Shown here one piece after another: positions 25,422 through 60,177 of a stretch of DNA of 64,000 nucleotides. The translations under genes were made by a program, and so were the position numbers. The stretch is from Anaeramoeba ignava BMAN. Its lineage: Eukaryota > Protista > Anaeramoebae. The number at the start of each line of letters is the position of its first letter. The stretch's first letter is position 1. The notes beneath the pieces are model-generated. The model searched no databases. It was not told the origin of the DNA and saw only the letters and a program-made list of their open reading frames with translations. The DNA lies in contig JAPDFW010000071.1 of the NCBI GenBank assembly GCA_028826165.1, positions 248,001 through 312,000 of the forward strand, given 5' to 3'.

Positions 25422-28400
25422 ATGACAAATCCTTTAGCTAAAATTGAAGATTCATTACAAACAACAAAAATTCAAACAAGTCAAGAACCTAAAATTCAAG
25501 AAAAAGTAAATAAAAAAAAAATTTAGAAAAAAAAACTTTTATGAATTAAACTTGAAATTTTTCATAAGGAAATTACACCAACTGAAACAGTAAATCTAAC
25601 ACTTGGATTTGTTCTCGAAGATAAACTTTGTCGGGCATATTTTCAACAATATTTACGAGAACAATTCTCATATGAAAATATGGGATTTTATTATGCTGTT
25701 CAAAAATACAGACATTTAGAAACTGATGAAATGAGAAATAGTTTTGGAAAAAAAATGTTTGATACTGTATTTATAACTAATTTTTTCATTTTTCAACATT
25801 CCAAAATTTATTTCAATTCAATTCAATTCAATTTAATTTAATATTTAATTCAATTCAATTCAATTCAATTCAATACAATTTAATTCAATTTAATTCAATT
25901 CAATTCAATTCAATTTAATTCAATTTAATTTAATTCAATTTAATTCAATTCAATTTAATTCAATTTAATATTCAATTCAATTCAATTTAATATTCAATTT
26001 AATTCAATTCAATTCAATTTAATTCAATATTCAATTTAATTCAATTCAATTCAATATTCAATTTAATATTCAATTCAATATTCAATTCAATTCAATTCAA
26101 TATTTAATTTAATTCAATATTTATTTTAATATTTAATTCAATATTCAATTCAATTCAATTCATTTCAATTCAATTCAATTTAATATTCAATTCAATTCAA
26201 TTTAATATTCAATTCAATTCAATATTCAATTCAATTTAATTCAATTCAATTTAATATTCAATTTAATATTCAATTCAATTCAATTCAATTTAATTCAATT
26301 CAATTCAATTTAATTCAATATTTAATTTAATTCAATTCAATTCAATTCAATTCAATTCAATATTTAATTTAATTCAATATCCAATTCAATTCAATTCAAT
26401 ATTCAATTTAATTCAATTTAATTCAATTTAATATTTAATTTAATTCAATATTTAATTTAATTCAATATTTAATTTAATTCAATATTCAATTCAATATTTA
26501 ATTCAATTTAATATTCAATTTAATTCAATTCAATTCAATTCAATTCAATATTCAATTCAATATTCAATTCAATTCAATTCAATTCAATATTTAATTTAAT
26601 TCAATATTTAATTTAATTCAATTTAAAATTCAATATTTATTTTAATATCCAATTCAATTTAATATTCATTTTAAAATTCAATATTTATTTTAAAATTTAA
26701 TATTTATTTCAAAATTCAATCTAAAATTTAAAATCTAGTATATTTCCACAGAATCAATGCAAGAAATTAATATAAATTCTGAAATGAAAAAAAAAATCAA
26801 TCAAACAATTGAAAATGAGGGATATACAAAAACACTATTTGACGAATCAATGGATCATATTATGGGAATATTAGAAACACATTCATTTCCTCGATTCAAA
26901 CAATCACAACACTACGAACTTCTTTTGAAGGATCTTGAACTAATTCAAACGGGCAAAACACCACATGGCCCAGAAACACAGAGAGACCAAGCCTTCAATT
27001 CAATATATACAATGAAGCAACAATTAAGTTCTAAACTCAATGATTATGCACAAGAATTCGAAACACTTGATCCAAATGAAAATTCACAACAAGAAAATAC
27101 AGTTATGAAAGAGATCCGAAGAATCTACGTGCAAATACGAGATGTTGAAATGGCAATAGCAAAGGATCTGCAGAAGAAGCAGACACAGTGGAATTATGAA
27201 CAGATATTATCAGATGTTTTTAAAAACGCTTCTCAGCAATATTATAAAATTTATAGTCAATATTTTAAAATATTCACTCAAATCGAACCAAATATTGAAT
27301 CCCTTGTTGATCAAAAGCATCCAAATAATGCGTTCAAAAGAATTACCAAGAAATACTTGTGTGATATCAAGTGCGTTTTAAGTCTTCCAATTGACGAATT
27401 GATGAAATTTGAAAATCTTCTTTTCAAACTAGTTGAATCTACATCTGAAGACCATCCAGATATCCACGAGCTCAAACAATTCACACAAGAGTTCCACGAG
27501 TTTGTTCTTTTTTCAGCGCAAGAGAGGGTTTTGCAAAGCAAGATTGTGGAAAGCAATCTGTATTTATTTAAAAATCGCAAACTTTTAAAAGAAGGAATTG
27601 GAAAAATAATAAAATACGCCCAAGATCCCTCACTCAACGGAGTATCTTTTCAATTACTTCTTTTCGAGGATTGTCTTTGCTGGGCTGTATCGGAAACACG
27701 CGATCAATCAACCCCTACAGAAGATCAAGAGACAGCAAAGAAAATCAAGTTTATTGTTGACGAGATCCTCCCAATCAACCTTGTTTGGATCAAGCAAGGT
27801 ATCGAATCATTGAAGTTTCTTGGGGAGTCGGTCTTCCAAATAACCTCTCCGGGAATTGAGCTTGCAGTATCCATTCCTGGCACCTCTGAATGGATTACTG
27901 AAATCGCAGCCGTTGTGGCCAAAAGTTGCGGACTTGATTCTCGAGATGTTTTTTCATCTCCGGAAAGAAAAGGCACTTTTTATCAGCCAGATCGCAGTCG
28001 CTACATAGGAACCCTTAAGGACGGCAAGTTTCATGGCGATGCGAAAATCATATATCCAAACGGTTCCGTTTTTGAGGGGAATTTTGTTGAGAATATCAAA
28101 TCTGGTCCTGCCAAATTGACTTTTCCTACTGGAGATATTTTAACGGCAAATTGGGAAAATGATTTTCCTTCTGGTTTAGCCAAAATCACTTACAAAAGCG
28201 GCACTGTTATATCTGGTAATTATTCCGATGGGTTCATTTCTGGTCCTGGAAAAATTCTTTTTTGTGATGGATCCGTTTATGAAGGTGATTTCGACAAAAA
28301 TAAAATGAATGGAAAAGGAACTCTTATTTATTCAAATGGTGATAAATATCAAGGTGAATTCAAAAATAATTTCCGTCATGGCCAAGGTGAATTTCATGAG

Positions 28401-29523: not shown

Positions 29524-29674
29524 AATTATTTTTTTTTTCTTTTTTTTCTTTTTTTCTTTTTTGAATTAATCAATTGATTTGCTTTAAAAAATTCCAAAAC
29601 AAAAACTCATTTATTATTTTTATTTTTATTATTTTTATTGAATTTAAAATTTGTTTTTGTTTTTGTTTTTGTTT

Positions 29675-32600
29675 TTATCTTTGAGTTCCATCTATTTTTA
29701 AATTTTTTGCTTTTAAAATTAAATTTATAATTTCATCATGAATTTGTTCATGTTCTTTTTTTGATTTTAAGATAATTTTCTCAACAGATTTCAATCCAAA
29801 TATAAAAATTGATTGAAAAATAGCGAAATGAAAAATTTCTTCAAATTTAACCATTTCCATAAAAGGTAAAGGTTTTTTATCTAAGAAAATCATAAGTTGA
29901 TTAGTGAATGATAATGTTGTTTTCAAATCTTTTTCTTTTAAAGAAATCATAAGTAATTTTCTAAATATCCGAAAATTATTATCATTTAAATAACCTCCAG
30001 TTTCTTCTATTGAAAATTGATAAGCTTCTTTTGAAGCTGAATAATGTTTAAGAATATAAGCAAAATCTCCAACAGTTTGATAATATTTTTCTGGATATTC
30101 TTCTTTTAATTCTATTATATTTGGATTTAAATCTTCTGTATGATTTAGGAAATGATTTAAATTTTTGCTATCAATTTCAGTAGCTCGAATTAAATTTCCA
30201 AACCATTCTGTACAAATTGATTTTTTATGTGGAGTTTTTATTTCAGAAAGAAAAGCATTTTGTTTATAAATTATTTTGTTGAAATTTTTTTCATTTCTTT
30301 TTGTTGATTTTAGATCATTTTCATTTTCAGAATTATCTGCAAAATAATTTGATGTTAATTCATATATATTTTCAATTTCATTTTGATTTTGATTTTGATT
30401 TTCAATTTGATTTTCATTTTGATTTTCATTTTGATTTTCATTTTGATTTTCATTTTGATTTTGATTTTGATTTTGATTTTGATTTTGATTTTCATTTTCA
30501 ATTTCATTTTGATTTTCATTTTGATTTTGATTTTGATTTTGATTTTGATTTTGATTTTGATTTTCATTTTGATTTTGATTTTGATTTTGATTTTGATTTT
30601 GATTTTGATTTTGATTTATATTTTGATTTTTATTTTGAATTTTTTGATTTTGATTTTGATTTTGATTTTGATTTTGATTTTGATTTTCATTTTGATTTTG
30701 ATTTTGATTTTGATTTTGATTTTGATTTTGATTTTGATTTTGATTTTGATTTTGATTTTGATTTTGATTTTGATTTTGATTTTGATTTTGATTTTGATTT
30801 TGATTTTGATTTTGATTTTGATTTTGATTTTCATTTTGATTTTGATTTTGATTTTGATTTTGATTTTGATTTTGATTTTGATTTTGATTTTGATTTTGAT
30901 TTTGATTTTCATTTTGATTTTCATTTTGATTTTCATTTTGATTTTGATTTTGATTTTGATTTTGATTTTGATTTTGATTTTGATTTTGATTTTGATTTTG
31001 ATTTTGATTTTGATTTTCATTTTCATTTTGATTTTGATTTTGATTTTGATTTTGATTTTGATTTTCATTTTCATTTTGATTTTGATTTTGATTATTTTCA
31101 TTTTGATTTTGATTTTGATTTTGATTTTCATTTTGATTATTTTGATTTTCATTTTCATTTTGATTATTTTCATTTTGATTTTGATTTTGATTTTGATTTT
31201 TATTTTGATTTTGATTTTGATTTTGATTTTGATTTTGATTTTGATTTTGATTTTGATTTTTATTTTCATTTTGATTTTTTAATTTATTTATTTTATAACT
31301 ATAATCAATATATTCTCCACTATAGAATTTTTCTTTAATAAATTCTTTATTATTTTCTTCAAAAACTCTTTTTTTGAAATTTTGTAATCCTTTCCATCCA
31401 AATAATTTCGAAAATTTTAACAATAAATAATAAATTTTCTTTTCCAAAAAATTTGAAATTGTTGTTCCAGGAAACAATCTTGATTGTAAAACACTTTGAG
31501 TATTTTTGGATTTGTCAAGAGAACAAAGATATTCTATATTCACTTTGTATTGGGTGGTATCGGGAATCATTATTCTTGCTGGCTTTGTGAAATGAGTATT
31601 AAAATTCATAACTGGATTTTTAGTAATTTTCTTGATTTTTTCAGGATTGATTTGATTTAATGTGAGAAAAAATTGTTTGTAATTTTCTGATGCAAAATAT
31701 GCTTTTGAGAGTAAAATATATCCATTTGGGTGATACGGAGCAACAGAAACTAAATGTTGAGCTAAAATCAAAGCTTTTTTGATTTTTTTATTTTTGATTA
31801 ATAATTTGATTAATTTCTCCATTAGTGGAATTGAGTTTGGCTTTTGTTGAAATGCTTTTGTCAAAATTGATAAAGGCTTTTGAATTTCTTTCAGTTTAGA
31901 ATATGATTTACTAACAATAATTGCTAATTCTGGTTCTTGATTTAGGAAATTTGAGAAAAATTCGATTGCTTGATTGAAATGGAAATTATTGAAGAAATAA
32001 TGCTTTATTGCTTTGATAAAGAAGTTGTTTCCATATGAAGGAAGTAATGTTGAATACACGCATCCTAATTTTTGTCCTTTCCATACTAAATTATTTAGTA
32101 AGTTTATAATTCTTGTTTTGTTGTTAATTTTTTCAAAGTCTTCAACAAATTTTAATATTGGATAATGTTCATAGATATTAATTTTGTGGAAATATTCACA
32201 TCTTAGAAAAGAGGAAATGAAAAGTTCTTCCCATAATTTTGATTTAATTTTTTCAAGTTTTAAAGTTTTGTTATTTTGAATTTATTTTCATTTTCATTTT
32301 CATTTTGATTTTCATTTTCATTTTGATTTTGATTTTGATTTTGATTTTGATTTTGATTTTGATTTTGATTTTGATTTTGATTTTGATTTTGATTTTGATT
32401 TTGATTTTGATTTTGATTTTCTTTTTCATTTTCATTTTGATTTTTATTTTCATTTTCATTTTTATTTTCATTTTGATTTTGATTATTTTGATTTTCTTTT
32501 TTATTTTCATTTTCATTTTCATTTTGGTTTATATTCTGATTTTCATTTTCATTTTGATTTTCATTTTCATTTTGATTTTGATTTTGATTTTGATTTTGGT

Positions 32601-33292
32601 TTATATTTTGATTTTTATTTTGGTTTATATTTTGATTTTTATTTTGATTTTGATTTTGATTATTTTGATTATTTTGATTTTGATTTTGATTATTTTGATT
32701 TTTGGTTTTGATTTTGATTTTTATTTTGATTTTGGTTTATATTTTGATTTTTATTTTGATTTTGATTTTGATTTTCATTTTGATTTTTATTTTGATTTTG
32801 ATTTTGATTTAAAGAAGGATATTTTCTAAAAAATAAATTTGCTTGATTATCAAAAAAGAAGAAATCTAAATTTTTTTGCAAATTAATTTTCTTTCCATCA
32901 GAATCAAAAAAATCAAAATAGAATTTTCCTGGAAGAATAAAATGTATATGGAAATCAATTTTTGAGAAAGCATTATAAGAACAATAAGTTCCTGATAAAA
33001 TTGTCCAATTTTTTTGAAAAAATTTGCTATTTTTTTGAGAATTAATCAATCGACCAAAATAACTAGCAATTCCAGCAAGACTTGAAGTATCAACACCAAT
33101 TACATGATGATAAAAACCAACAAGTGAAGCTGGATCATTTTTTGGGTTTGATGAACTACTTTTAATTAAATGACAAAGATCTGGTGATCCTAAACCTATT
33201 TTTGTTTGTTTGAGTTGGTTTTGTCTTGATATAAAACTTTCTCCTAAAACATTCTCAACCATTTCATGAGTAAATGATAACCACTCTGTCAT
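29675..33292 (-). CDS. ChAPs-family (Bch1/Bud7-like exomer cargo adaptor) TPR protein with two large NQ insertions; compensating indels at about 32700 and 32283
   Basis: N-terminus GLGSPDLCHLIK..YHHVIGVDTSSLAGIASY..GTYCSYNAFSKID..PG, then LWEELFISSFLR and TPR helices ending FFLTLN, as in ChAPs. ORFs 33292 and 32059 share a frame, but the NQ tract between them is shifted and contains stops. Confidence 0.8.
30372..31277 (-). repeat. Coding (AAAATC/G)n array, about 300 aa poly-NQ
   Basis: (gatttt)n on + strand, in frame within the ChAPs ORF. Confidence 0.95.
32283..32810 (-). repeat. (AAAATC/G)n array inside ChAPs gene
   Basis: (gatttt/catttt)n on + strand; no GT donor at its 5' edge, so it is probably coding. 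Confidence 0.85.
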
Positions 33293-33422
33293 TTTAATAA
33301 AAAATGAAAAATGAAAAATGAAAAATGAAAAAAAAATTCAAAAAAAATATTTTTTTTCTCCTTTTTAATTTTTTTTTTCTTCTTTTTTTTTCATTTTTTT
33401 CATTTTTCTTTTTTTTCTTTAA
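33293..33422. promoter_or_regulatory. 130-bp putative bidirectional promoter with back-to-back TCATTTT arrays
   Basis: (aaaaatg)x4 next to the ChAPs ATG (minus strand) and tttttcattttttttcattt next to the kinase ATG (plus strand). Confidence 0.55.
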
Positions 33423-36400
33423 ATGATTTCAAATTATTTTATTTTTGCTTTTTTCCTTTTGTTTTTTTTATTTTCAATAATAAAAACTTTGACATTAACA
33501 GAAAACAAATTGATTTATCCAACATTTGCAAATGAAAAAACAAATGAAAAAACAAATGAAATTTACAATGATCATCCCATTTTCTTTTCAAAATCAACTT
33601 TTTTTCTTTCATCTACAGAATTATTAGATAGAATTGAATTAGATTCTGGAGATTTAATTAATTTAAGAATAAGAGCAGATGGAGCAATAGTAGGAATTAA
33701 TAAATTTTCAAGAGAAATGTATGTTTCAAGTGCACCTTTTGCTTATACAGATGATTTTGAAGAAGTTGAAGTTATTTATAATTTGAATAAAGAGATTGAC
33801 AACAATAATTTTAACAAAGAAATTGACAACAATAATTTTAACAAAGAAATTGACAACAATAATTTTGATAAAAAGATTGACAACAATAATTTTGATAAAG
33901 AAATTGAATTGAATAATTTTGATAAAGAAACTGAATTAAATAATTTAAACAAAGAAATTGACAACAATAATTTTGATAAAGAAATTGAATTAAATAATTT
34001 TGATAAAGAAATTGACAACAATAATTTTGATAAAGAAATTGACAACAATAATTTGAATAAAGAGATTGAATTAAATAATTTGAATAAAGAAATTGACAAC
34101 AATAATTTTGATAAAGAAATTGAAAACAATAATTTAGATAAAGAAATTGAATTGAATAATTTTGATAAAGAAATTGAATTAAATAATTTTGATAAAGAAA
34201 TTGACAACAATAATTTAGATAAAGAAATTGACAACAATAATTTAGATAAAGAAATTGAATTGAATAATTTTGATAAAGAAATTCACTTGAATAATACTTT
34301 TTCAATCAAAAATAAAATACAATTTCTTTCACTTTCAAAAAATTCTTCCAAAAAATCTCTTATTGTTGATCCTTTAGTTTATTCTTCTTTTTTTGGTGGT
34401 CATTCTGATGATGTTGTAACTGCTTTTCAACTTTCTCCAGAATTAAACGAATTTTCATTTTTAATAGCTGGAGTAACACAAAGCATGAATTTTCCAATTG
34501 AGAATAACATAGATTCTATGTCAGAACCTCATAATGAAATACCTGTAGCTTTTATAACTCATATGAATTACAAAGGAATCATGTCATTTAGTACTCTTTT
34601 TGGACCTCTTTCCCAATCAGAAACTCAACATGTTATTCCAACTGGTGTTTTTCATGATTTAGATGGGAATCATTGGGTTACTGGTTATGTAAAGAATTGT
34701 TTTTAAAATTAAAATTAAAATTAAATTTAAATTTAAATTTAAATTAAAAATTATTTCTCATTTTTTAGACAAGTATCTCTGATATTCCCACTTCAATTAA
34801 TTCTCTTTCAAACAAAACACACAATTCTATCACTAGCGGATTTATTCTTCAATTAAGTAAACACGGAAATCATCTTATGTATTCTACATTATTTGGCGGT
34901 GATCATGATTCTTCAGCAACCAAAATTTATGGACTTGGATATTCAAGAAATTTTGGACCAATTATTGCTGGAATAACAAATTCTACATCTTTATTGAATG
35001 GTGTCACAAATTTAGCTGATTCGGAAGATACAAATAGTGCTTTTATTGCATTTTTGGAAATCAGTCCAGAAACTTCATTCATTTCACATATTATCAAAAT
35101 TGGAGAATCAAACAATTCAGAATTTCGCTCATTGGCTGTTTTTGAAGAAAACGGAATTCAAAATTACACAAATATCGTTGCAGCAGGAACAACCGATTAT
35201 CCAAACCTTTCAACTTATCCCCAAATTGATGGGGATTTCCCAACAGGAACTGCTGGTTTCATGTGCAGATTCAATATTTCTTACAGCCCTTTTAGCATAA
35301 TTGAGAAAGTGTGTGATTATATCGGAACAAATGCAAGTTTTGTTGATGATTCAATTTGCGCAGTTACTCTTGATATTGGGTATTCTGGTTCTTTGATAGA
35401 CTCATATTTCATTTCAGGATCAACTAAAAATTATGAGAATTTTACAGGAAATTTTGTTTTTGCTTCTACAAATTTAACCTCTTTAGCTCCGCATTACGAT
35501 TTCAATGCAAGTGTTGGATATGCACTTCGTGCAAGTAAAAATGGACATTTGAATTATTCCATTTTGGTTGGATGCAAGGATGCAGATACATACATTACTT
35601 CCACTTCTTTTCATTTGAGTAATATTTTATCAATTTCTGGAGTTACTTCTTGTGACATGAATATGAATAACAGTGTTTGGAATGATATCAATAAGGATGA
35701 ACTCAAAAACTATTCAACAAAATCATTTGTTTTGAAAGTGAATATAACACAAATCGGTAAATTTATTAATCAACAAAAATAAATCAAAATCAAAATCAAA
35801 ATTAAAATCAAAATTAAAATCAAAATTAAAAAAAAATAGAGCAATCAACACAAAATGAAACTCTCGAACAATTTATTATTTGGTCAAGTTATATTGATCC
35901 ATATCTTTCAGATCACCCACGCAATCAATTTTCAACTATACAACTTGATTATTCAGGAAATATATATTCAATATTCAATATCCCAAGTGGCATAACCACA
36001 AATCTAACAACAACAATTGATGCATATCAAGATACTTCTCCAGGAGGAACATCAATATTCATTCAAGTATTTGGAGGATTTGAATGCGAAATTGGATCAT
36101 ACAGTTCTTCTGCAAAAAATATTTGCATTCCTTGTGAAGCTGGGCATTATTCAAATAAAATCAACATGCCTGAATGCAAACTCTGCTCGGAAAATGAAAA
36201 CCAACCTTTTATGGGAAGTATAGAATGTTTAGGATGCTTGAATACAACAAATGAAAAGGGAAAAACAGATTGCGTCAATTCCCACGCCCCATATATGCCT
36301 ACAATTTGGGTCAACGAAACAGGAGAGGATGAAATCAAAGTTCAATGGATTTCTCCTAATATGAGCTCTGACAATATTTCGTTTAATCTTCGAATTTTTT

Positions 36401-38454
36401 CGGATTCGATTGATATTTATTTCTTTGTTCAAAATTGCACCTTAATTGATAACAACACATGTGAGACTGAATTTGATGGGCTTTATCAAGACACATCATA
36501 TTACATCTCAATTCAGTCGATATTAAACACAGGCACTGAATCTTTAGTAGGCTCTTGGACAGCCACCATTTTAGAAACAACATATGGACCACCTTATCGT
36601 ATTAATCCATCATCGATCAAACAGAATTATGATAAAAATACTGAGTTCGTTTCTTGGGATCCGCCGTTTGATAATAATCAGGAAATTTTCGGTTATATTT
36701 TAACTTATGGAATTCGTTCACGTGATCGTGGTACTTTCGAAATGAATTCGGTTGCCTCTCAAAATCCAAACGTTACAATAAGGAATTTGAAACCAAACCA
36801 AACATATTACTTGGATATTTTTGCAATCAATAGAGGAGGAACAGGACCTTCTTTAAGAGATGCTGGAGTGATGTTTTTATCAGGATATTCTGCACCCGCT
36901 CCTGTGGAAATATTCCAAAAAACATTTGATACCGATGGACTTCTTCTTTCTTGGAATCCTCCTGAGAATTATGGTTCTAATATTAGCAATTACCGATATC
37001 AATTAAAAAATAAACCCGGATCAATGAAAAACATCTCCAACGATACAACAGAGTATCTTGTGAGTGAATGTGATGAACAATGCACAGTTACAATACAGGC
37101 AGCCAATCAATTCGGATGGTCAGATGAAAACTACAAAGATTTCCAAATGGAAAAGGCGTCCAAAACAATTTCTTACGTTCTTATTGGTATAACAGTTGGT
37201 TTAGCAGTAATCATTATTGTTCTTGTTGCAACAAGAAGCAAAATTAAGAACACAAGAAGGAAGAAGGCGATTCGTTCTCGAATGAAGAGAATGAAGAAAA
37301 ACTTCGACAAGCACGTGTTGCACAAGCTTGTTCCGCAGCAAGAAACATGGTTTTTCGAGGCATTCCGACCAGATCTTGTTTTTGATATTACGAGCGATAT
37401 CGAGACTAAAATGTATGTTCGTCAAGGAGACCATATCGTGATTCTTAACGAACATGTTTCAGGTGGATTGGTTTTCTGCAAACAAACATCAAAATCTGAA
37501 ATTGAAATTTTGGAGTATTTATGGAAAAAATATCTCGAATTGCCAATGGCGTTCCCGATGATCCAATTCATTGGAGGAACTGAAAAACAACCCGGACACA
37601 ATCGAAAACGTTCTATTAAGCGCAAAAAGCAATTCGATAATGTTCCCCAAAACGATCCGCTTGAGCTCTCCTCGGAAACTGATTCGGATAGCGATCAAAT
37701 CGATTCAATTCAAATCAACGATAATCTCGAGAAAATCCAAGAAAATTCTCTTAAAGATTCCTCAAAACAAATGAAAATTTTCCCTGAAATGAAGAAGAAA
37801 ACAATGATTATTTCTGTGCAATATTTCCCGATGTCTCTTTATGATTATTTGCACATCCGTAAGGAACGCAAACAAGCATTCCAAGAAGATGAGAAAATTT
37901 GGATTGCGTTTAATTTGGCAAAAGCGATCCAATTTATTCACAGTTGTTTTGTGATTCACAGAGACATCAAACCCAAAAACATTATGATCGGAACTGATGG
38001 ATTTCTTCGTGTTGTTGATTTCAACACTGCCGTTAAATTGAGAAAGGGTCAAGCTGTTTTCCGCGGTCCAAGAGTTGGTACTCTTGAATATTTTGATGAT
38101 GCTCCTTCTTATCATTTCGATCCAAAAACTGGTCAATCACATTTTCTTTATACATATGCTCATGATATCTATTCTTATGGAAGAGTTCTCCAAGATCTTT
38201 ATTTTGATGATTCTGATGTCGGTTTCGAAATTGTTTCTTTGAAAGATAAATTTCATACTTCTTCTGAGTTTGATGTTGATTCTGATACTCCGAATGATGA
38301 GTTACTTGGTAAAAATATTTCTCAAGGAACAGAAGTTGATAGAATTATGATGATTATTATTGATTCTTGTCTTGCAAATCCTAAAATTAGAACTAATTGG
38401 AATGATATTTTACAGAATTTACAACCTTTTGTGAAGACTATTTTCAAGATTTAA
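33423..38454 (+). CDS. Single-pass receptor-like kinase: signal peptide, SBBP-type beta-propeller, Cys-rich (GCC2/Eph-like) repeats, 3 FN3, TM, divergent Ser/Thr kinase
   Basis: Exons 33423-34688, 34769-35756, 35840-38454. LIVDPLVYSSFFGG and WVTGY|TSISDIPT (SBBP); CEIGSYS..CIPCEAGHYS..ECKLC; FN3 motifs (VSWDPP, LKPNQTYYLDIFAINRGG, LSWNPPENYGS); TM YVLIGITVGLAVIIIVLVA; kinase HRDIKPKN, DFN, VGTLEY, DIYSYG. Confidence 0.85.
33783..34280 (+). repeat. Coding 27-nt tandem repeat (9 aa EIDNNNFDK/EIELNNFDK, about 18 copies)
   Basis: gataaagaaattgacaacaataatttt variants in frame in the kinase ectodomain. Confidence 0.92.
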
Positions 38455-39575
38455 ATTCAAAATCAAAATGAAATTGAAATTCATTTATAAAATTAAAATC
38501 AAAATTAAAATCAAAATCAAAATTAAATTTAAAATTAAAATTAAAATCAAAATCTAAATATAAAATCAAAATTAAAATCAAAATCTAAATCAAAATCAAA
38601 ATTAAAATTAAAATCAAAATCAAAATCAAAATTAAAATTCAAATCAAAATTAAAATCAAAATTAAAATAAAATAAAATCAAAATCAAAATTAAAATAAAA
38701 ATAAAAATCTAAATTAAAATCAAAATCAAAATCAAAATCAAAATTAAAATCAAAATTAAAATTAAAATCAAAATCAAAATCAAAATCAAAATCAAAATCA
38801 AAATCAAAATCAAAATCAAAAATCAAAATCAAAATCAAAATCAAAATCAAAATCAAAATCAAAATCAAAATCAAAATCAAAATCAAAATCAAAATCAAAA
38901 TCAAAATTAAAAATCAAAATCAAAATCAAAAATTAAAAAATCAAAAATCTAAATAAAAATCAAAATCAAAATCAAAATCAAATCAAAATCAAAATCAAAA
39001 TCAAAATCAAAATCAAAATCAAAATCAAAATCAAAATCAAAATAAAAATCAAAATCAAAATCAAAATCTAAAATCAAAATCAAAATCAAAATCAAAATCA
39101 AAATCAAAATCAAAATCAAAATCAAATCAAAATCAAAATCAAAATCAAAATCTAAATCAAAATCAAAATCAAATTAAAATTCAAAATCAAAATCAAAATC
39201 AAAATCAAAATCAAAATCAAAATCAAAATCAAAATCAAAATCAAAATCAAAATCAAAATTAAAATCAAAAATCAAAATCAAAATCAAAATCAAAATCAAA
39301 ATCAAAATCAAAATCAAAATCAAAATCAAAATCTAAAATCAAAATCAAAATCAAAATCAAAATTAAAAATCAAAATCAAAATCAAAATCAAAATCAAAAT
39401 CAAAATCAAAATCAAAATCTAAATCAAAATCAAAATCAAAATCAAAATCAAAATCAAAATTAAAATCAAAATCAAAATCAAAATTAAAAATCAAAATCAA
39501 AATCAAAATCAAAAAATTAAAATTAAAATCAAAATTAAAATTAATTAAAATCAAAATTAAAATCAAAATTAAAAT
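38455..39575 (+). repeat. Intergenic (AAAATC)n array starting directly after the kinase stop
   Basis: About 1.1 kb of aaaatc/aaaatt hexamers with frequent phase slips, non-coding. Confidence 0.95.
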
Positions 39576-39680
39576 TTATTTGAATAAAACGTTTTTAATG
39601 AGAATAAAAGAAAAATTTTTCATTTTTCATTTTTCATTTTCATTTTCATTTTTCATTTCATTTTTAATCTTATTTTATAA

Positions 39681-42384: not shown

Positions 42385-42387
42385 TAA

Positions 42388-44076: not shown

Positions 44077-44216
44077 AAAAATATAAATTTAGAATCGATT
44101 GTTTTGCTTTTTTTTTACAAAGAGATTTGCCTTTCAAATAAAAACAAAAAATTTATTTTTTTATTTTAATTTTTTTTTTTCATTTTTTTTCTTTTTATTT
44201 TTATTAATTATTTTAA

Positions 44217-47200: not shown

Positions 47201-47815
47201 AATTAAAATTAAAATTAAAATTAAAATTAAAATTAAAATTAAAATTAAAATTAAAATTAAAATTAAAATTAAAATTAAAATTAAAATTAAAATTAAAATT
47301 AAAATTAAAATTAAAATTAAAATTAAAATTAAAATTCATTTATAAAATTAAAATTAAAATTAAAATTCATTTTGAAATTAAAATCAAAATTAAAATTAAA
47401 ATTAAAATTTATTTTGAAAATTATAATTAGAATGAGAGAAAGTAGAGAAACAGAATTAATTGTTCCTGATATTACTTATGCAACTTTCAATGATATTCTT
47501 CAATTTCTTTATTCAGGAGAAATTTTAATTACTGATGAAACTGATGTAATTTCCCTTTTAGTAGCAGCTGATGAATTAGCTATTGATCCTCTTAAATCTA
47601 GATGTGAATCTGTAATTTCAGTTAATATTGATCTTGGAAACTGTTTAGATTTATTGCAATTTTCTGATATTTACTTTGCTCATCAACTCAAAGAACATGT
47701 TATTCATTTTATTTTGAAGAATATACAAAAAGTCAAGAAAACTCCTGAATTTTCAAAATTGGATTCGGAATTGCTCGCAGAAATTGAATTAAAAGCAAAA
47801 TCAAAAACTAATTAA
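44217..47815 (+). CDS. 8-exon two-TM membrane protein fused to tandem BTB + BACK domains
   Basis: Exons 44217-44396, 44918-45055, 45284-45524, 45604-45731, 46311-46472, 46553-46631, 46717-46882, 47431-47815 splice in frame. TM1 VLFFLIFATGFIFFCVSLFGLY; TM2 GAIISLSVISAIILYPVLGFLFGYYL; BTB1 FSDITF..FLGHK|IILSQRC; BTB2 FSDIAFIVEGK.IAAHKIILASRSDYY..SG|MRES; BACK NCLDLL..LKEHVIHFI. Confidence 0.85.
44428..44910 (+). repeat. Intronic (AAAATT)n array (intron 44397-44917); same unit in introns 45056-45283 and 46883-47430
   Basis: Direct reading. Confidence 0.92.
45740..46303 (+). repeat. Intronic 12-mer (AAAATTATTATT)n array filling intron 45732-46310
   Basis: The intron splits the BTB GHK|IILS motif; its interior is almost purely A/T. 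Confidence 0.92.
46900..47425 (+). repeat. Intronic (AAAATT)n array with CATTTAT interruptions
   Basis: Intron 46883-47430. Confidence 0.9.
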
Positions 47816-48128: not shown

Positions 48129-51100
48129 TTAATTGATATCACCAATCTTAGTCCAATCTGATGTGTTATAAGATGGGATATTTGGGTTCATAACTGAATC
48201 TCTTAGTTGTTTTTGTTTTCTTTTCTTGTGATAAATGACAACAAAGATAATAGCTCCAACAACAACAATTGGAACAACAACAGCTGGAACAATAACTCCA
48301 ACTTTAGAAGTACTTTCTGATTTAGATGTTGGTGATTGACAACTTGATCCATCTATAATATTAATTTTAATTTTAATTTAAAATGAATTTTAATTTTAAT
48401 TTTAATTTAAAATGAATTTTAATTTTGATTTTAATTTTGATTTTAATTTTGATTTTGATTTTGATTTTAATTTTGATTTTGATTTTGATTTTGATTTTGA
48501 TTTTGATTTTGATTTGGATTTTCATTTTCATTTTCATTTTGATTTTGATTTTGATTTTGATTTTGATTTTGATTTTGATTTTGATTTTTGATTTGGATTT
48601 TGATTTTGATTTTGATTTTGATTTGGATTTTGATTTGGATTTTGAATTACCTCCACCACAAACTCCACAAATATCAACTTCACATTGACAAAAATCTTTA
48701 CTTGCAGAAATAACTACTGATCTATAATTTGTATCAAATTGAATTGAAGCAGGATTTACTTTACCAAAACTGATTGGACCAGCCCAGTTATTTGGATAAC
48801 TTGTAACTGGAATAACATTAAGTTGACCATAAGCTCCAGTTATTTGACCACTTGATTTGGAATAAGTTTCAGTTAAATTCAACAGTTCCTTTCATAAAAC
48901 AATTATCCCATGTTGTCATTCCAAGTTGTAAACTTCCCATCCAAAAATCTCCAGAATATTCAAATATATATTCATTTGAATTTGAATTATCGGTGTTGTA
49001 AGTTGCATTTATTGCCCATTGGAAATTTGAAGGTTCTAATGTTTCTCCAAATGTATCTATTTATTTTTTTTGAAAATATATAAAAGTAATTTTTAGATTT
49101 TGTTTAATAAATAAATTTTAAATAATTGAATAAAAAATTAATTACTATCAGGTGTTGAATCAAGTTTTGAGAAACTAATAAGAGGGAAAGTTCCATGAGA
49201 TGACATATTTCCAATCTATTTAAAAACCATAAATATAAAATATTGATTTAATATTTTAATTTAATAAAATAATATCAATTTAATAAAATAATATTAATTT
49301 AATAAAATATTATTAATTTAATAAAATAATATCAATTTAATAAGATAATATCAAGTTAATAAAATATTATCAATTTAATAAAATAATATCAAGTTAATAA
49401 AATATTATTAATTTAATAAAATATTATCAATTTAATAAAATATTATCAATTTAATAAAATAATATCTATTTAATAAAATATTATTAATTTAATAAAATAT
49501 TATTAATTTAATAAAATATTATTAATTTAATAAAATAATATTAATTTAATAAATTATTATCAATTTAATAAAAAATAATATTAATTTAATAAAAATAATA
49601 TCAAGTTAATAAAATATCAAAATATTATCTATTTAATAAAAATATTATCAATTTAATAAAATATTATTAATTTAAATATCAATAAAATAATATTAATTTA
49701 ATCAAATAATGTTAATTTAATCAAATAAAAAATATTATTAATTTAATAAAATATTATCAATTTAATAAAATATTATCAATTTAATAAAATAATATTAATT
49801 TAATAAAATATTATCAATTTAATAAAATATTATTAATTTAATAAAATAATATTAATTTAATAAAATATTATCAATTTAATCAATTTAAATTTAATAAACA
49901 AACCTGCATCCAATCACCAATATTTCTGTCTGCTGGTGCCTCGTTTTGATAATGAGCTTGACCTTGAGCAACAGTTGTTGAAAAAGTATATGAAGAAGTA
50001 TAGACACAATTTGCCGGTGTTGGTGAACTTCCATTACTCATTGATGCTTCAAAATCATAACAAGCTAATCTAGAACCTTGATCATCACGAAGAAGAAGTT
50101 CAATTTTGTATTTTCCTATTGGAAATTCTGGAACTCTTTATAAAACAAAATAAATTATTAGAATTAGAATTAAAATTAAAATTAAAATTAAAATTAGAAT
50201 TAGAATTAGAATTAGAATTAAAATTAGAATTAGAATTAGAATTAGAATTAGAATTAAAATTAGAATTAGAATTAGAATTAGAATTAGAATTAGAATTAGA
50301 ATTATAATTAGAATTAGAATTAAAATTAGAATTAGAATTAGAATTAGAATTAAAATTAGAATTAGAATTAAAATTAAAATTAAAATTAAAATTAGAATTA
50401 AAATTAGAATTAGAATTAGAATTAGAATTAGAATTAGAATTATAATTAGAATTAGAATTAGAATTAGAATTAAAATTAGAATTAGAATTAGAATTAGAAT
50501 TAGAATTAGAATTAGAATTAGAATTAGAATTAGAATTAAAATTAGAATTAGAATTAGAATTAGAATTAGAATTAGAATTAGAATTAGAATTAGAATTAGA
50601 ATTAGAATTAAAATTAAAATTAGAATTAAAATTAGAATTAGAATTAGAATTAGAATTAGAATTAGAATTAGAATTAGAATTAGAATTAGAATTAGAATTA
50701 GAATTAGAATTAAAATTAGAATTAGAATTAGAAATAGAATTAGAATTAGAATTAAAATTAGAATTAAAATTAAATTAGAATTAGAATTAGAAAAAGAAAT
50801 GAGAATTTTGTATTTTATTTGAAAGTTACTTAATATCGTAATCTTTTCGAACATAATTGCCGGCCACAACAGGACAACTAAATATTTCACAAGAATCAAA
50901 ATCCATTTCAATAATTGGATCTGCTGAGAAATTTTGATACCAAACCTAAATTTATTTTATTTTTAATTTTATTTTTAATTTAAATAAAAAAAAAAAGAAA
51001 AAAAAAAAGCAAAAAAAAAAGCAAAAAGAAAAGAAACAATTTACAGCAAGATGTAAAGTTGAACCAGTGCTAATTTCATAACCTGTTTTAATTGAATAAT

Positions 51101-51264: not shown

Positions 51265-51474
51265 TTTGATCAATTCAATTTTAATTTTAATTCAATTTAA
51301 TAAAAGAAAAAATGATTTGTTTTTTTTTCTCTTGTTTTCTAAAAAGGAAAAAAAAAATTTTTTTTTAATTAATTTCTTTGTTTCTTTTTTTCTTTATTTT
51401 AATAGGGGGCATTATTAATAATTAATAAATAAAAAATTCTTTTTAATAAATTTAAAATAAAAAAAAAAGGAATA

Positions 51475-52970
51475 ACACTTATTTCAATTCTAAATCCAAT
51501 TTCAATTTAGTTTTGTTTAATTTAAAATAAAAAGTGGAATAAAATTTAATTTTAATTCTAAATCCAATTTCAATTTAGTTTTGTTTAATTTAAAATAAAA
51601 ATGGAATAATATTTAATTTATTTTAATTCTAAATCCAATTTCAATTTAATTTAATTTAATTTAATTTAAAATAAAAAGTGGAAAAATTTGGAATAATATT
51701 TAATTTATTTAAAATTGGAATAAAAATTCAATTCCAATTTCAATTTAATTTAGTTTAATTTAAAATAAAAAGTGGAATAATATTTAATTCAATTTAATTT
51801 AAAATAAAAAATGGAATAAAATTTATTTCAATTCTAAATCCAATTTCAATTTAATTCAATTTAATTTAATTAAAATAAAAAGTGGAATAATATTTAATTT
51901 ATTTCAATTCTAAATCCAATTTAATTTAAATTAAAATAAAAAGTGGAATAATATTTAATTTTAATTCTAAATCCAATTTAATTCAATTTAATTTAATTTA
52001 ATTCAATTTAAAATAAAAAAGTGGAATAATATTTAATTTCAATTCTAAATCCAATTTAATTTAATTTAGTTTAATTTAAAATAAAAAGTGGAATAATATT
52101 TAATTTCAATTCTAAATCCAATTTAATTTAATTTAGTTTAATTTAAAATAAAAAGTGGAATAATATTTAATTCAATTTAATTTAAAATAAAAATGGAATA
52201 AAATTTATTTCAATTCTAAATCCAATTTCAATTTAATTTAATTTAATTCAATTTAAAATAAAAAGTGGAATAATATTTAATTTCAATTCTAAATCCAATT
52301 TCAATTCAATTTAATTTAATTTAAAATAAAAAGTGGAATAAAATTTAATTCAATTTAATTTAAAATAAAAATGGAATAAAATTTATTTCAATTCAATTTA
52401 TTTAATTTAAATAAAAATTTCAATTATATTTTTAATTCTAAATCCAATTTCAATTTAATTCAATTTAAATTAAAATAAAAAGTGGAATAATATTTAATTT
52501 ATTTCAATTCTAAATCCAATTTCAATTTAGTTTTGTTTAATTTAAAATAAAAAGTGGAATAAATTTAATTTTAATTCTAAATCCAATTTCAATTTTAATT
52601 AAAATAAAAAGTGGAATAATATTTAATTCAATTCAATTCTAAATCCAATTTCAATTTAATTTAATTTAATTTAAAATAAAAAGTGGAATAAATTTAATTT
52701 TAATTCTAAATCCAATTTAATTTAATTAAAATAAAAAGTGGAATAATATTTAATTCAATTCAATTCTAAATCCAATTTCAATTTAATTAAAATAAAAAGT
52801 GGAATAATATTTAATTTATTTCAATTTAATTTAATTTAATTAAAATAAAAAGTGGAATAAAATTAATTTATTTTAATTTATTTCAATTTATTTCAATTTA
52901 ATTCAATTTAATTTAAATTAATTTAATTTAAAATAAAAAGTGGAATAAAATTAATTTATTTTAATTTCAA
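51475..52970. repeat. Intergenic minisatellite, about 40-70 bp unit with conserved AAAATAAAAAGTGGAATAA and ATTCTAAATCCAATTT blocks (about 25 copies)
   Basis: Direct reading; lies just downstream of the 53020 stop codon. Confidence 0.9.
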
Positions 52971-53019
52971 TTTTAGTTGTAATTTTATTTAATTTTAATT
53001 CAAAAAATGAAAATGAAAA

Positions 53020-54645: not shown

Positions 54646-54677
54646 TATTATTATTATTATTTTTATTATTTAAAAAT

Positions 54678-54706
54678 TGAAAAAAATGAAAAAAATGAAA
54701 AAAATG
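54678..54706 (-). promoter_or_regulatory. Tandem TCATTTTTT initiator-like array upstream of ATG 54645
   Basis: (tgaaaaaaa)x3 on + strand. Confidence 0.45.
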
Positions 54707-54833
54707 ATTTTGTTTTTTTTTTTGTTTTTCTTTTTCTTCAAAAACAAAATTTCAAAATGAAAAAAATTTGATTTGATTTGATTTGATTTGATTTGGAAAA
54801 AGAAAAAAGAAAAGAAAGAAAGAAAGAAAAAAA

Positions 54834-57800
54834 TCATCGTTTATCACCCAATAAGGAATTTGCAGTTTTAATAAGATTAACAGGTTTTTTTGCATCAGCA
54901 ATCAAATATCCATTGAGATTCAAACCTTCAAGTAATTCTGCTTTATTTAGCAATTCTGATTGTGACATTATTTCCAACGTTTCAGGACCAATCAAGGTGA
55001 CGATTTCCTTGAATTTCTTTGAATAAATTTGGGACATTTCCTTTGCAAAGTCAATTTCAAGAAGATTCATTTGCTTTTTGTGTTCGAATTCAGCACTATT
55101 TTTTTCCTTCGAGAAATCGAGTTTGATTTTGTCTTCAATTTCCTCAGCAGTTGTAGTTAATGTTGCCTGATTGACTTTTGATTCTCCTTGAATAACGGCT
55201 GCTTCTGATTTTGCTTTTGCCTGCGCTTTTGCCTTCCCGGCGGTTTCTATTGATTTGCAGTCAGCTTGTTGTTGGTACAAAGTTTGGCGAGTTGTTTCGG
55301 CTTCAATTTCATCCTCAAGCTGCTGGATTTCAAGCTTTCCTTGTGATTCTGTTGATTTTTTCAACGCTTCATGTCGCGCATCTGCTTCTTGAGATTGGGT
55401 AGTAATGGATATTGCGAGTTGAACTGATTTTTGGAGTGACAGTCTTGTTTCTTCATCGATTGGTTCGACCGTTTGAATATCGATGTCAGTTACAATTAGA
55501 TTATTTGCTTTGAACTCAAGTCTGTCACGAACATGACCGGTTTTCTTGTCGACGCCAAAAACAGCCTTTCGGATCAACTGAGTAGGAGTTACGATGGAAT
55601 TCGTCAAATGGCGTTGCTGCAACACTTCCTCTGATTCTCGAACCAATAGCCTTGCACATGTCACCAATGAAGTCAGGTACTTGGAAAATTTTGGTTGATT
55701 CTTCCTTGATGTCTTTGTTGACTTCGAAACGCCAGGCATATTGCAGTTTAAGATTCAATCGGGCGTGGTCGCTTGTTTCTACTGTCACAAGATCTGTCGA
55801 GAAGTCTGGTCCCAAAAGAAGCGCGATTGCCTTGACTTGATGACCGATTTTTGGTCTTCCAGCTGACAACGACAAGACAGTGAAATCTTCATCAGGTTCA
55901 AGCATCACAAGATCAGGTCCAAACTGGACTCGTGCTGTTTTCTCTTTGTAGTCGTAGATCTGCACTGCAGAGTTATTTGGGATCTGGAATGTAACCACTC
56001 GTGTTTTGTCTCTTTGTGGCGCTTCCATTTGATCCGGTTGGATTCCACCTCGAGTGATTGTCGGATCTACATCAATGTTGATAAGCTTTTCCACAACGCT
56101 TGTCAACTCCTTTTCCCAAAGTTCCTCATATGGCTTGAGCATGTATGTTTCTCCAATCACTGTTCGGATCAATCCTGTCCGCAAATCTCGCACATAAACA
56201 CCCTCGTCTTTGTGCAACGGTATTGCTGCACGTCTCTCCAATAATTGCACTGCCACAGGCGGTATGTATCTCCGTGGCCCATGCACCATCCACCGCTCGC
56301 CAGGGGTTCTTCGTACTTTTGAAACTTTTTTATCTTTTTTCTTTTTTTCCTTGTTTTCGTTGTTCATGTCGGTGTCATGTTCGAGTTCTTTTTGTTCGTC
56401 TTCAAATTCCTCAACGCACCTTAAAAGAAGCGCTTCATTTTTCTTCAAAGTATTCACTTTTTCCAGTCCATTGTTCAGCAATTCTCCAGGATGCAAGAAA
56501 AAGTGTGGCTTCGCCTTTGCGGAGTTGTTTCTTGCCAAAGTGTTGCTTGCCATCAATGACTGGATTGAGAACAACACAGTACTGCATGTCGTTGAGAATA
56601 ACAAGGGGAACTTCTCTCACCACATCTTCAAACACTCCAGGAATGTAGTATTCTGTTTCCTGTTTTGTTACAAGCCATTCATTACCTGCTTTGCGTTTCT
56701 TGCCGAATTTGTCCACAAAAGTGCTTCTTGCTTTCAAATGAAGCGCCTTCCTGTCTGTGAGTACAAATCCCTTCACTAACCCCAAAACCTTCTCTTCCAC
56801 TTTTGGAAGATAAAATCCCTCTTTTGTTTCCAACCAAATTTCTCCTGCCTTGCGTGTCACTTCCCCGTCTGTAAAAGTACTCAGTGCTGTTAATTTCAGT
56901 GCACTGCTTTCTTCAATGAAAACTGCCTTAACAGTCTCTAATACCTGAACGCGAATGTTCGGGATATATGTTCCTGGTCCTTCAAAATACCATTCTGTTC
57001 CGGCTTTTCTTTCCACAATTACATCATTGATTTTTTCCTTGAAATCTTGGATTGCTTTTAATCGCAAGGCTTGTTGTGGTTGAACAGTTTGTAGTTTTAA
57101 AACACTACCTAATAATTTTTCTCCTGGATAAAGTGGGAATTTTTCATTTGATTCAAATCTAATTTCCTTTTCTCCATATTTCAACAAAACCTAAAAAGCA
57201 AGAAATTATTTAATTATTTAATCAATTATTTAAGAAATTATTTAAGAAATTATTTAAGAAATTATTTAATAAATTATTTAAGAAATTGTTTAATTATTTA
57301 AGAAATTTTAAGAAATTATTTAATAAATTATTTAAGAAATTATTTAAGAAATTATTTAAGAAATTATTTAATAAATTATTTAAGAAATTATTTAATAAAT
57401 TATTTAAGAAATTATTTAAGAAATTATTTAATAAATTATTTAATCAATTATTTAAGAAATTATTTAAGAAATTATTTAAGAAATTATTTAATAAATTATT
57501 TATTTAATTATTTAATTAATTATTTAAGAAATTATTTAATAAATTATTTAATAAATTATTTAATAAATTATTTATTTAATTATTTAATTATTTAATAAAT
57601 TATTTAAGAAATTATTTAATTAATTATTTAAGAAATTATTTAATAAATTATTTAATAAATTATTTAAGAAATTATTTAATAAATTATTTAAGAAATTGTT
57701 TAATTAATTATTTAATCAATTATTTATTATTTAAGAAATTATTTAAGAAATTGTTTAATCAATTATTTAATCAATTATTTAAGAAATTATTTAAGAAATT

Positions 57801-60177
57801 ATTTAAGAAATTATTTAATAAATTATTTAAGAAATTATTTAAGAAATTATTTAAGAAATTATTTAAGAAATTATTTAATAAATTATTTAAGAAATTATTT
57901 AAGAAATTATTTAATAAATTATTTAATAAATTATTTAATCAATTATTATTTAATTATTTAATAAATTATTTAAGAAATTGTTTGTAAATTATTTAATAAA
58001 TTATTTAATAAATTATTTAAGAAATTATTTAAGAAATTATTTAAGAAATTATTTAAGAAATTATTTAATAAATTATTTAATAAATTATTTAATAAATTAT
58101 TTAAGAAATTATTTAAGAAATTATTTAATAAATTATTTAATAAATTATTTAAATTAATAAAATTTATTTGTTTAATTATTTAATAAATTATTTAAGAAAT
58201 TATTTAATAAATTATTTAATAAATTATTTAATAAATTATTTAAGAAATTATTTAATTATTTAAGAAATTATTTAATAAATTGTTTAATAAATTATTTAAG
58301 AAATTATTTAAGAAATTATTTAAGAAATTATTTAAAATTATTTAATTAATTATTTAATAAATTATTTAATAAATTATTTAATAAATTATTTAATAAATTA
58401 TTTAAGAAATTATTTAATAAATTATTTAAGAAATTATTTAATAAATTATTTAATTAATTATTTAAGAAATTATTTAAGAAATTATTCTTTAAGAAATTAT
58501 TTAAGAAATTATTTAATAAATTATTTAAGAAATTGTTTAATAAATTATTTAATAAATTATTTAAGAAATTATTTAATAAATTATTTAATAAATTATTTAA
58601 GAAATTGTTTAATTATTTAATAAATTATTTAAGAAATTATTTAATAAATTATTTAAGAAATTATTTAAGAAATTATTTAATAAATTATTTAAGAAATTAT
58701 TTATTTAATTATTTAAGAAATTATTTAAGAAATTATTTAAGAAATTATTTAATAAATTATTTAAGAAATTATTTAATAAATTATTTAATTAATTATTTAA
58801 GAATTATTTAAGAAATTATTTAAGAAATTATTTAATAAATTATTTAAGAAATTATTTAATAAATTATTTAATAAATTATTTAATAAATTATTTAAGAAAT
58901 TATTTAAGAAATTATTTAATAAATTATTTAATAAATTATTTAAGAAATTATTTAATAAATTATTTAATAAATTATTTAATAAATTATTTAAGAAATTATT
59001 TAAGAAATTATTTAAGAAATTATTTAATTAATTATTTAAGAAATTATTTAATAAATTATTTAATAAATTGTTTAATAAATTATTTAAGAAATTATTTAAT
59101 AAATTATTTAATTAATTATTTAAGAAATTATTTAAGAAATTATTTAAGAGATTATTTAAGAAATTATTTAAGAAATTATTTAAGAAATTATTTAAGAAAT
59201 TATTTAAGAAATTATTTAATTATTTAAGAAATTATTTAAGAAATTATTTAATAAATTATTTAATAAATTATTTAAGAAATTATTTAATAATTTGAAATTA
59301 TTTAATAAATTATTTAATAAATTATTTAATAAATTATTTAAATTATTTAATAAATTATTTATTTAATTATTTAATAAATTATTTAAGAAATTATTTAAGA
59401 AATTATTTAATTAAATTATTTAATAAATTATTTAAGAAATTATTTAATAAATTATTTAATAAATTATTTAAGAAATTATTTAAGAAATTATTTAATAAAT
59501 TATTTAATAAATTATTTAATAAATTATTTAATAAATTATTTAATTAAATTATTTAAGAAATTATTTAATAAATTATTTAATAAATTATTTAATAAATTAT
59601 TTAAGAAATTATTTAAGAAATTATTTAATAAATTATTTAATAATTTAATTATTTAAGAAATTATTTAATTAATTATTTAAGAAATTATTTAAGAAATTAT
59701 TTAATAAATTATTTAAGAAATTATTTAATAAATTATTTAATAAATTATTTAAGAAATTATTTAAGAAATTATTTAAGAAATTATTTAATAAATTATTTAA
59801 GAAATTGTTTAATTAATTGTTTAAGAAATTGTTTAAGAAATTGTTTAATTATTTAATTATTTATTTGTTTAATTATTTAGTTATTTAAGAAAAAAGCAAA
59901 AAATTTTTTGCTCTTTTCCTTCTCTCAAATTCCCATTTTATATACATACTTGTCCATTCTCATCTAAAACTGGTTCATTATCCTCAATAACAACAGGATT
60001 TTCAATAACACAATACTGTCTTGGTCCAACTAAAATCATTTGTTTTGGTCCGTCAACAACTTTTTCATTATGTTGTTTTAAATAAGTTAATGGACCAACA
60101 AATAAACGAGTTATGTTTGTGTCTTCATCTAAAACATGTATATATTCATATGGTTTGAGTTTTATTGTATCTGACAT
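54834..60177 (-). CDS. MVP: Major vault protein, 2 exons; two +1 indels (about 56500 and 55585)
   Basis: Exon 1 60177-59950, intron 59949-57191, exon 2 57190-54834. Nine MVP repeats (PYEYIHVLD..N..GP.TY; FPLYPGE; RKAG.EW; EGVYVRD..G; RDKTRVV..AVQIYDY), shoulder (LLLGPDF.TD..VETSDHARL..VPDFIGD.CKAI.SRIRG.VA) and cap helix (LQKSVQLAI.ITT.SQEA.ARHEA). Confidence 0.95.
57200..59890 (-). repeat. 12-mer satellite (plus strand AAATTATTTAAK)n, over 200 copies, filling the 2759-nt MVP intron
   Basis: aaattatttaag / aaattatttaat units between donor GTATGT (59949) and acceptor TTTTAG (57191). Confidence 0.95.

Follow-up and report, generated by a model that had tools for sequence, protein, structure and literature searches.

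The window analyzed here is a stretch of 64,000 nucleotides from Anaeramoeba ignava BMAN (assembly GCA_028826165.1, contig JAPDFW010000071.1, positions 248,001 to 312,000 of the forward strand), and coordinates given below without a locus name are positions in it. Among its genes are an RGS-RhoGEF-MORN gene, an FN3-kinase gene, a bacterial-type RtcB gene and a double-BTB gene on the plus strand, and the genes of a Cys-rich type-I membrane protein and of the major vault protein on the minus strand. The window contains 11 long introns (228–2759 nt), all of which are bounded by GT and AG on the strand of their gene and are filled largely or almost wholly with tandem repeats. Our measurements, in the window and in a sample taken elsewhere in the genome, show that essentially every A. 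ignava intron longer than about 150 bases is an AT-rich tandem repeat nearly from end to end.

Arrays were called with Tandem Repeats Finder (TRF), and a TRF score of at least 100 defined a "strong" array. In the RGS-RhoGEF-MORN gene an intron of 972 nt (25767–26738, plus strand) is 95% covered by an AATTC-type 5-mer array. The first RtcB intron (39992–41027, plus strand; 1036 nt) is a decayed composite of a 19-mer and a 6-mer, 54% of which is strong array, and the second (41298–41699, plus strand; 402 nt) is an AATATTT-type array that runs from donor to acceptor and covers 99%. The double-BTB gene (plus strand) begins with two AAAATT introns that lie in a single array (44428–45278) interrupted by a 138-nt exon; each is 94% covered by (AAAATT)n. 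Intron 1 (44397–44917; 521 nt) is delimited by the sole GTA..AG pair that keeps both reading frames, and intron 2 (45056–45283; 228 nt) by a frame-consistent GTATGT..TAG. Farther along the same gene lie a 579-nt intron (45732–46310) made of about 48 copies of a 12-mer and a third AAAATT intron of 548 nt (46883–47430), each 98% covered; the donor of the latter is placed by RNA at 46883, not at the array start at 46894. The membrane-protein gene (minus strand) has introns of 298 nt (48353–48650; sense (CAAAAT)n, 98% covered, with a frame that runs into the transmembrane exon), 688 nt (49216–49903; a 19-mer array, 94% covered, between exons that are open on both sides) and 694 nt (50136–50829; sense (TCTAAT)n, 106 copies at 94% match, 92% covered). 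The largest intron, 2759 nt in the major vault protein gene (57191–59949, minus strand), is 97% covered by about 223 copies of a 12-mer.

Strong arrays thus make up 92–99% of ten of these introns and 54% of the remaining one. A preliminary description of the window had divided its introns into two size classes and had all 11 longer ones filled with tandem repeats, and so we find them; TRF arrays are present at each place it named, and the eight intervals for which it gave coordinates start with GT and end with AG at exactly those bases. The short introns of these genes measure 79–85 nt, and four that were checked are all GT..AG. In each long intron the best TRF score per base was compared with those of 20 composition-matched (dinucleotide-type) shuffles, and it exceeded all 20 in ten of the 11. 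The exception is 41298–41699, which has 0.5% GC, so that an A/T-only shuffle of it is itself repetitive. TRF coverage was dropped as a statistic because A/T-only shuffles themselves reach 60–97% coverage.

Spliced gene models were judged exon by exon. Junctions were read from RNA and DNA run contigs in a repeat-free cluster of exons (46271–46933) of the double-BTB gene. Runs X3 and X4, from two studies, behave as RNA in that their depth drops to zero within the short introns. One contig was obtained from each run (1457 nt for X3 and 1523 nt for X4), and both contigs skip two short plus-strand introns, 46473–46552 (80 nt) and 46632–46716 (85 nt), through GT..AG joints, the first of which is absent from the DNA contigs. 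The 30 letters that precede 46311 in these contigs are window positions 45702–45731 (with one base different in X4); at 46882 the contigs depart from the genome, and their next 30 letters are window positions 47431–47460. The RNA contigs therefore join 45731 to 46311 and 46882 to 47431, so the long introns 45732–46310 and 46883–47430 are removed exactly. A DNA contig (run X1, record 1) spans the whole cluster without a break, with every exon and short intron in it, and reaches into an array on each side. We also observed that the X4 contig, from the older study, differs from the assembly and from X3 by A>G at 46376 and by T>C at 45728, before the junction; these single-base differences could reflect strain, culture or allele.

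Protein evidence extends to other junctions. The public A. ignava RtcB protein P0016 (344 aa), an RNA-guided model, equals the translations of the three RtcB exons (residues 1–26, 28–116 and 118–344), and the codons split by the introns read ATT (I) at intron 1 and GGT (G) at intron 2. In an alignment of P0016 with a bacterial RtcB, the motifs show no gaps across either junction. The RGS profile is matched at positions 5–55 before intron 25767–26738 and at 57–115 after it, and in the major vault protein gene Vault_2 positions 1–31 lie in the upstream exon and 34–59 in the exon downstream of the 2.76-kb intron. Positions 29–81 and 48–107 of the BTB profile are matched after introns of the double-BTB gene. 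Altogether, exact removal at the bases given is documented for four introns by RNA (two long and two short) and for both RtcB introns through the public model. These data show that the long introns of the window are real GT-AG spliceosomal introns, and that the junctions covered by RtcB, RGS and Vault_2 matches restore conserved motifs, as the preliminary description had held from the letters of the sequence.

Introns elsewhere in the genome were chosen blind to repeats, as gaps between consecutive six-frame matches to the Pfam families Cpn60_TCP1 (CCT), Myosin_head, HSP70 and RtcB (a second RtcB gene), each gap being trimmed to the GT..AG pair that preserves the reading frame. Forty-seven such gaps gave 46 introns, all GT..AG, of which 15 are 58–86 nt long and the other 31 are 156–1710 nt long. 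In every one of these 31 the best TRF score per base (0.62–1.76) is above the maximum of 20 shuffles. Long introns in this sample are thus not mostly non-repetitive, so the outcome that the preliminary description had said would refute it did not occur. Over the 42 long introns of window and sample together, the median distance from the first base to the start of the array is 10.5 nt and that from its end to the last base 8 nt. A median of 26.5 nt per intron lies outside the array, far below the length of a minimal intron.

The nuclear assembly comprises 147 contigs and 42,843,398 bases (PMC11550330, Table S1). Its RNA-guided annotation contains 32,108 introns that together occupy 22.5% of the genome, with a mean length of 300 nt, a median of 102, a mode of 76 and a maximum of 4168 (PMC11550330). 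Intron GC content is given there as 8.14%, and the text describes the introns as extremely AT-rich only. The words "tandem" and "microsatellite" are absent from the main text of that paper, and "tandem repeat", "simple repeat", "microsatellite", "low complexity" and "RepeatMasker" are all absent from the 15 supplementary files that we searched. Keyword searches of the literature returned no description of a genome whose intron lengths are determined by tandem arrays. We conclude that the pattern is real, general and undescribed for A. ignava.

Comparison of closely related myosin genes shows where the length differences lie. In one pair (C91:287228–287948 and C61:410075–411418) the exons are identical at 528 of 528 bases, and the intron is 193 nt long in C91 and 816 nt in C61; it has the same 12-mer in both, in 15 and 66 copies, and its ends are alike. 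A second pair, C93 and C117, has exons that are 97.3% identical and introns of 79 versus 156 nt and of 1710 versus 207 nt. The 79- and 156-nt introns agree in their first 30 and last 28 or so bases; what sets them apart is an internal duplication whose period is about 49 nt. Thus copy number turns over much faster than bases do, whether the loci compared are paralogues or haplotigs. Short introns already hold three to eight copies of AAAATT or AAAATC: reading the sequence, we find three to four copies of AAAATT and AAATTT in the interior of an 80-nt intron of the FN3-kinase gene (34689–34768, plus strand) and about eight copies of AAAATC or AAAATT in an 83-nt intron (35757–35839, plus strand). 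Such copies are plausible seeds for the arrays.

The repeat units are diverse. A survey of 88 sampled low-GC arrays found 43 unit types, 33 of them represented by a single array; the recurrent units are AAAATT (eight arrays), AAAATC (six) and AAATT (four), with the hexamer AAAATT dominant. The preliminary description had called the units mostly locus-specific, which is right for the 33 singleton types and wrong for these three, which recur at many loci; its remark that neighbouring introns of one gene often carry different units is borne out by the TRF calls in the window, where the units of such neighbours are unrelated. The period is a multiple of 3 (mostly 6, 12 or 18) in 45 of 63 short-period arrays. 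The other 25 of the 88 have long periods (67–487 nt) built from shorter AT-rich motifs, and many of these are apparently intergenic, as at 51442–53000. Within arrays, periodic identity is about 0.83 in the interior, 0.68 in the first tenth and 0.75 in the last tenth, and a regular interior with decayed edges is the usual picture for homogenization by unequal exchange.

The arrays also obey strand rules. Over 40 long introns the sense strand has 1.2% G and 4.0% C, and AG occurs 72 times versus 242 for CT. With the two obligatory splice-site Gs excluded, C outnumbers G in 28 introns and G outnumbers C in ten (p = 0.005); short introns have the same sense-strand deficit of G relative to C. AAAATT arrays are oriented as well, with the A-rich strand as sense in all but two of 19 introns (17 of 19, p = 0.0007). 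The rules are consistent with selection against cryptic splice signals.

Tandem arrays are not confined to introns. In a random genome sample of 200 kb from 18 contigs, 29% of bases belong to strong arrays, and low-GC arrays of at least 150 nt account for 23%. Sorting the arrays of this sample as intronic or intergenic by the strand of the longest flanking open reading frame (ORF) was dropped because it mislabelled the intronic arrays at 57212–59849 and 49250–49898. In the window, a 1.1-kb (AAAATC)n array called by TRF (38453–39575, plus strand) reaches from the stop of the kinase ORF (ORF end 38454) to about 100 nt before the RtcB region; the kinase domain has space to finish inside that ORF, and the array is apparently non-intronic. 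A 1.7-kb intergenic 11-mer array (42385–44078, plus strand; 154 copies at 91% match) extends from the base after the RtcB stop to 139 nt before the next ATG, and the end of P0016 coincides with the ORF end at 42381. By TRF and ORF layout, the membrane-protein gene is separated, on its 5' side, from the 3' end of the following minus-strand ORF by a complex higher-order array with periods of 67, 129 and 205 nt (51442–53000).

Other arrays lie in frame within ORFs. A plus-strand (GAAAAT)n array of 197 copies by TRF (6630–7814) would encode about 395 codons of (EN)n and is flanked by ordinary coding sequence. On the minus strand, a hexamer array with sense units AAAATC and AAAATG (30368–31278) would encode (NQ/NE)n inside a 794-codon ORF. 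Further in-frame (NQ/NE)n hexamer arrays occupy 32273–32810 and 20092–20228, and none of these four in-frame arrays has splice sites at its edges. Public A. ignava proteins include tracts of the (NQ)n and (EN)n types, and a homology search of public proteins with the 794-codon ORF (303-codon tract) did not have the window's own model among those returned. We also noted an 18-mer array of 69 copies (62791–63999) overlapping the 5' part of a TPR gene ORF (60502–62919, minus strand), where it may encode a repeat of six residues. Since arrays also lie between genes and in frame within ORFs, their amplification is not intron-specific.

The RtcB gene (39912–42384) bears on the age of its introns. 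It is of the bacterial type, with 53–61% identity to proteins of Spirochaetota and other bacteria, yet it has two introns, which must therefore have been gained after transfer. We observed in addition that Pfam similarity continues for some 15 codons before the annotated start, on the far side of an in-frame stop. The second RtcB gene in the genome is of the eukaryote type, and there C84 334391–335333 appeared as a candidate for a long non-repetitive intron (30% GC); it was ruled out, being an in-frame insert with a weak intein match. This insert of about 320 codons and 30% GC lies directly before profile position 331 (C84, about 334044–335300, minus strand). Its Intein_splicing match scores 27 bits, below the cut-off of 35.8; an intein carried by a nuclear RtcB gene is one possible interpretation.

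Our data support the view that intron length above a minimum of about 60–85 nt comes from local tandem amplification and not from transposons. We think it probable that the long introns are ordinary GT-AG introns whose interior has been replaced nearly completely by AT-rich micro- or minisatellite DNA, so that their length is a by-product of a genome-wide inflation of satellites. Such an intron would start as a minimal one (about 60–85 nt, about 8% GC) in whose interior motifs such as AAAATT are already repeated a few times. The motif, or a mutated derivative of 5–19 nt, would then grow to tens or hundreds of copies through replication slippage and unequal exchange. This growth would be tolerated if, as it seems, splicing requires little beyond GTA at the donor end and (T/A)AG at the acceptor end; with a sense strand almost free of G, the arrays would offer no GT or AG decoys and might owe their tolerance to being invisible to the splicing machinery. 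The same process would act on all low-complexity DNA, in intergenic regions and also in coding sequence where the unit reads through in frame.

This reading separates two parts of what the preliminary description had proposed. Its claim that local amplification and not transposon insertion sets intron length stands as far as amplification goes, given the array edges, the paralogues and all 31 longer introns of the sample; the implication that the process belongs to introns does not. Nor is its suggestion of a distinctive mechanism of genome expansion supported in that form, since arrays are also intergenic and coding, and slippage and unequal exchange in AT-rich non-coding DNA were already known. 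What is unusual here is the scale and completeness of an extreme form of a known mutational process. A survey of mismatch-repair genes had also been proposed. Profile matches over the cut-off in the genome number six for MutS_V and four for the MutL type (DNA_mis_repair), an assignment at the family level; with six MutS-type and four MutL-type genes present, the instability of the repeats is not due to a complete loss of mismatch repair.

Several points weigh against satellite inflation as we have formulated it. Direct RNA evidence identifies two of the 11 long introns of the window, the public model two and profile continuity two, and GT..AG ends and reading frame only identify the other five (44397–44917, 45056–45283 and the three of the membrane-protein gene, 48353–50829). 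The test of generality covers 46 introns from four conserved families out of 32,108, and the array lengths are those of the published hybrid assembly. The C91/C61 myosins could be haplotigs, an assembly duplicate or a very recent duplication rather than true paralogues (length variation is shown in any case), and the length changes between paralogues are not polarised as expansion or contraction. Finally, the G-poor sense strand could come from a transcription-linked mutation bias and not from selection.

A bolder extension is that tandem arrays in this lineage not only lengthen introns but also create or remodel them, that arrays switch among the states of coding tract, intron and spacer, and that the strand rules are a footprint of selection. 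The RtcB introns, occupied by array from donor to acceptor, the in-frame hexamers in ORFs and the 26 or so non-array bases left in a long intron all point that way, and we nevertheless regard the extension as unlikely. With a median of about 26 non-array bases per long intron, the branch site must lie inside the repeat or at its very edge. If the extension were true, the spliceosome would accept nearly any G-free AT array bounded by GTA...(T/A)AG, and G depletion together with the A-rich orientation of AAAATT would represent selection that keeps arrays invisible to splicing.

Satellite inflation has to be weighed against three other accounts. The best of these, and in our judgement an improbable one, is that the arrays are maintained by selection for a function, for example in the timing of transcription or splicing, nucleosome exclusion, replication origins or protein binding. 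In its favour are the strength of the strand rules (17 of 19 AAAATT introns with the A-rich strand as sense, p = 0.0007; C above G in 28 introns versus 10), periods in multiples of 3 in 45 of 63 short-period arrays and the fact that arrays make up about a quarter of a compact 43-Mb genome. However, units and lengths vary freely between recent paralogues whose exons are unchanged, neighbouring introns of one gene have unrelated units, and similar arrays lie between genes and inside ORFs; moreover, the strand rules are explained equally well by selection against harmful motifs or by a mutation bias inherited from the short-intron seed.

It is very unlikely that the arrays are an assembly artefact in which a long-read assembler inflated short, low-complexity introns. 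Their lengths are indeed taken from the assembly, and short-read contigs do break within them, but short-read DNA contigs, obtained independently, continue from the exons into the array on either side, and the arrays are not perfect runs but contain many variant copies in ordered blocks. In the DNA runs the summed depth of array words is thousands-fold over that of unique exons, which is of the order to be expected if such arrays make up about 1% of the genome, although depth is not copy number. In the published RNA-guided annotation introns average 300 nt and reach 4168 nt (PMC11550330). Least likely of all is that the long introns are inserted mobile elements, introner-like or other transposons with repetitive bodies, for although the RtcB introns gained after transfer mean that some process of intron gain exists in the lineage, the arrays come within about 10 nt of both splice sites and cover more than 90% of the introns so that there are no transposon ORFs, the 46 introns share no visible termini beyond GTA...(T/A)AG (no formal search for terminal repeats having been made), the 88 arrays have 43 distinct units, and homologous short and long introns have identical ends and differ inside only.

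If satellite inflation is accepted, A. ignava offers a natural example of intron size governed almost wholly by satellite dynamics, with no visible contribution from transposons. By rough arithmetic on the published figures, intron length above the 76-nt mode amounts to about 17% of the genome. The arrangement implies that splicing in this organism needs very little information from the interior of the intron, and it yields a testable rule, namely that the sense strand is poor in G in all arrays and rich in A in those of AAAATT. There are practical consequences as well: the arrays break short-read assemblies and can mislead gene finders as to whether a repeat is intron, spacer or coding tract, and they should serve as highly polymorphic markers.

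Each of several known systems resembles this one in part. Intron gain through introners or transposons is known from Micromonas and from some fungi and dinoflagellates; the introners of a genome have defined ends and are scattered copies of a single sequence family. Like them, the process in A. ignava is lineage-specific and adds intron DNA to many genes; unlike them, it involves no common family, and growth takes place inside an existing intron. Human intronic expansions such as FXN GAA, CNBP CCTG and C9orf72 G4C2 are rare, usually harmful and confined to single loci, and their units contain GC. In both cases errors of slippage or repair make a short intronic motif grow locally, at a pace in copy number that far exceeds that of point substitution, but in A. 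ignava most long introns are normally in the expanded state, apparently without harm.

Plasmodium falciparum has been reported as the genome most dense in short tandem repeats (PMC12699852). Among genomes, the nearest in type are those of AT-rich protists with abundant simple sequence repeats. A. ignava is like Plasmodium and Dictyostelium in its extreme AT bias, in the slippage-prone, low-complexity nature of its introns and intergenic DNA and in having in-frame hexamer or trinucleotide tracts that give N/Q-rich runs. For Dictyostelium discoideum, Eichinger et al. in 2005 reportedly found more than 11% simple repeats, including coding N/Q tracts. Introns in Plasmodium and Dictyostelium are, as far as is known, short (about 100–180 nt) and contain small simple sequence repeats, whereas in A. 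ignava arrays of up to about 220 copies, with units of up to 19 nt, set the length of the intron (the figures compared are not like-for-like measurements).

The closest parallel lies in the Y-linked fertility genes kl-3 and kl-5 of Drosophila, which have gigantic introns that contain satellite DNA (PMC6508621). There too the bulk of the intron is simple satellite that is transcribed and then spliced out, and different introns have different satellites. The Drosophila introns are hundreds of kilobases to megabases in size, and the largest intron here is 2759 nt and the published maximum 4168 nt. In Drosophila the phenomenon is confined to a few introns of megabase size, whose genes are heterochromatic, testis-specific and dependent on a special programme of expression; in A. 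ignava, by contrast, it concerns introns of 0.15–4 kb, essentially every long intron, and housekeeping genes such as those for CCT, HSP70 and myosin, with arrays that run from splice site to splice site.

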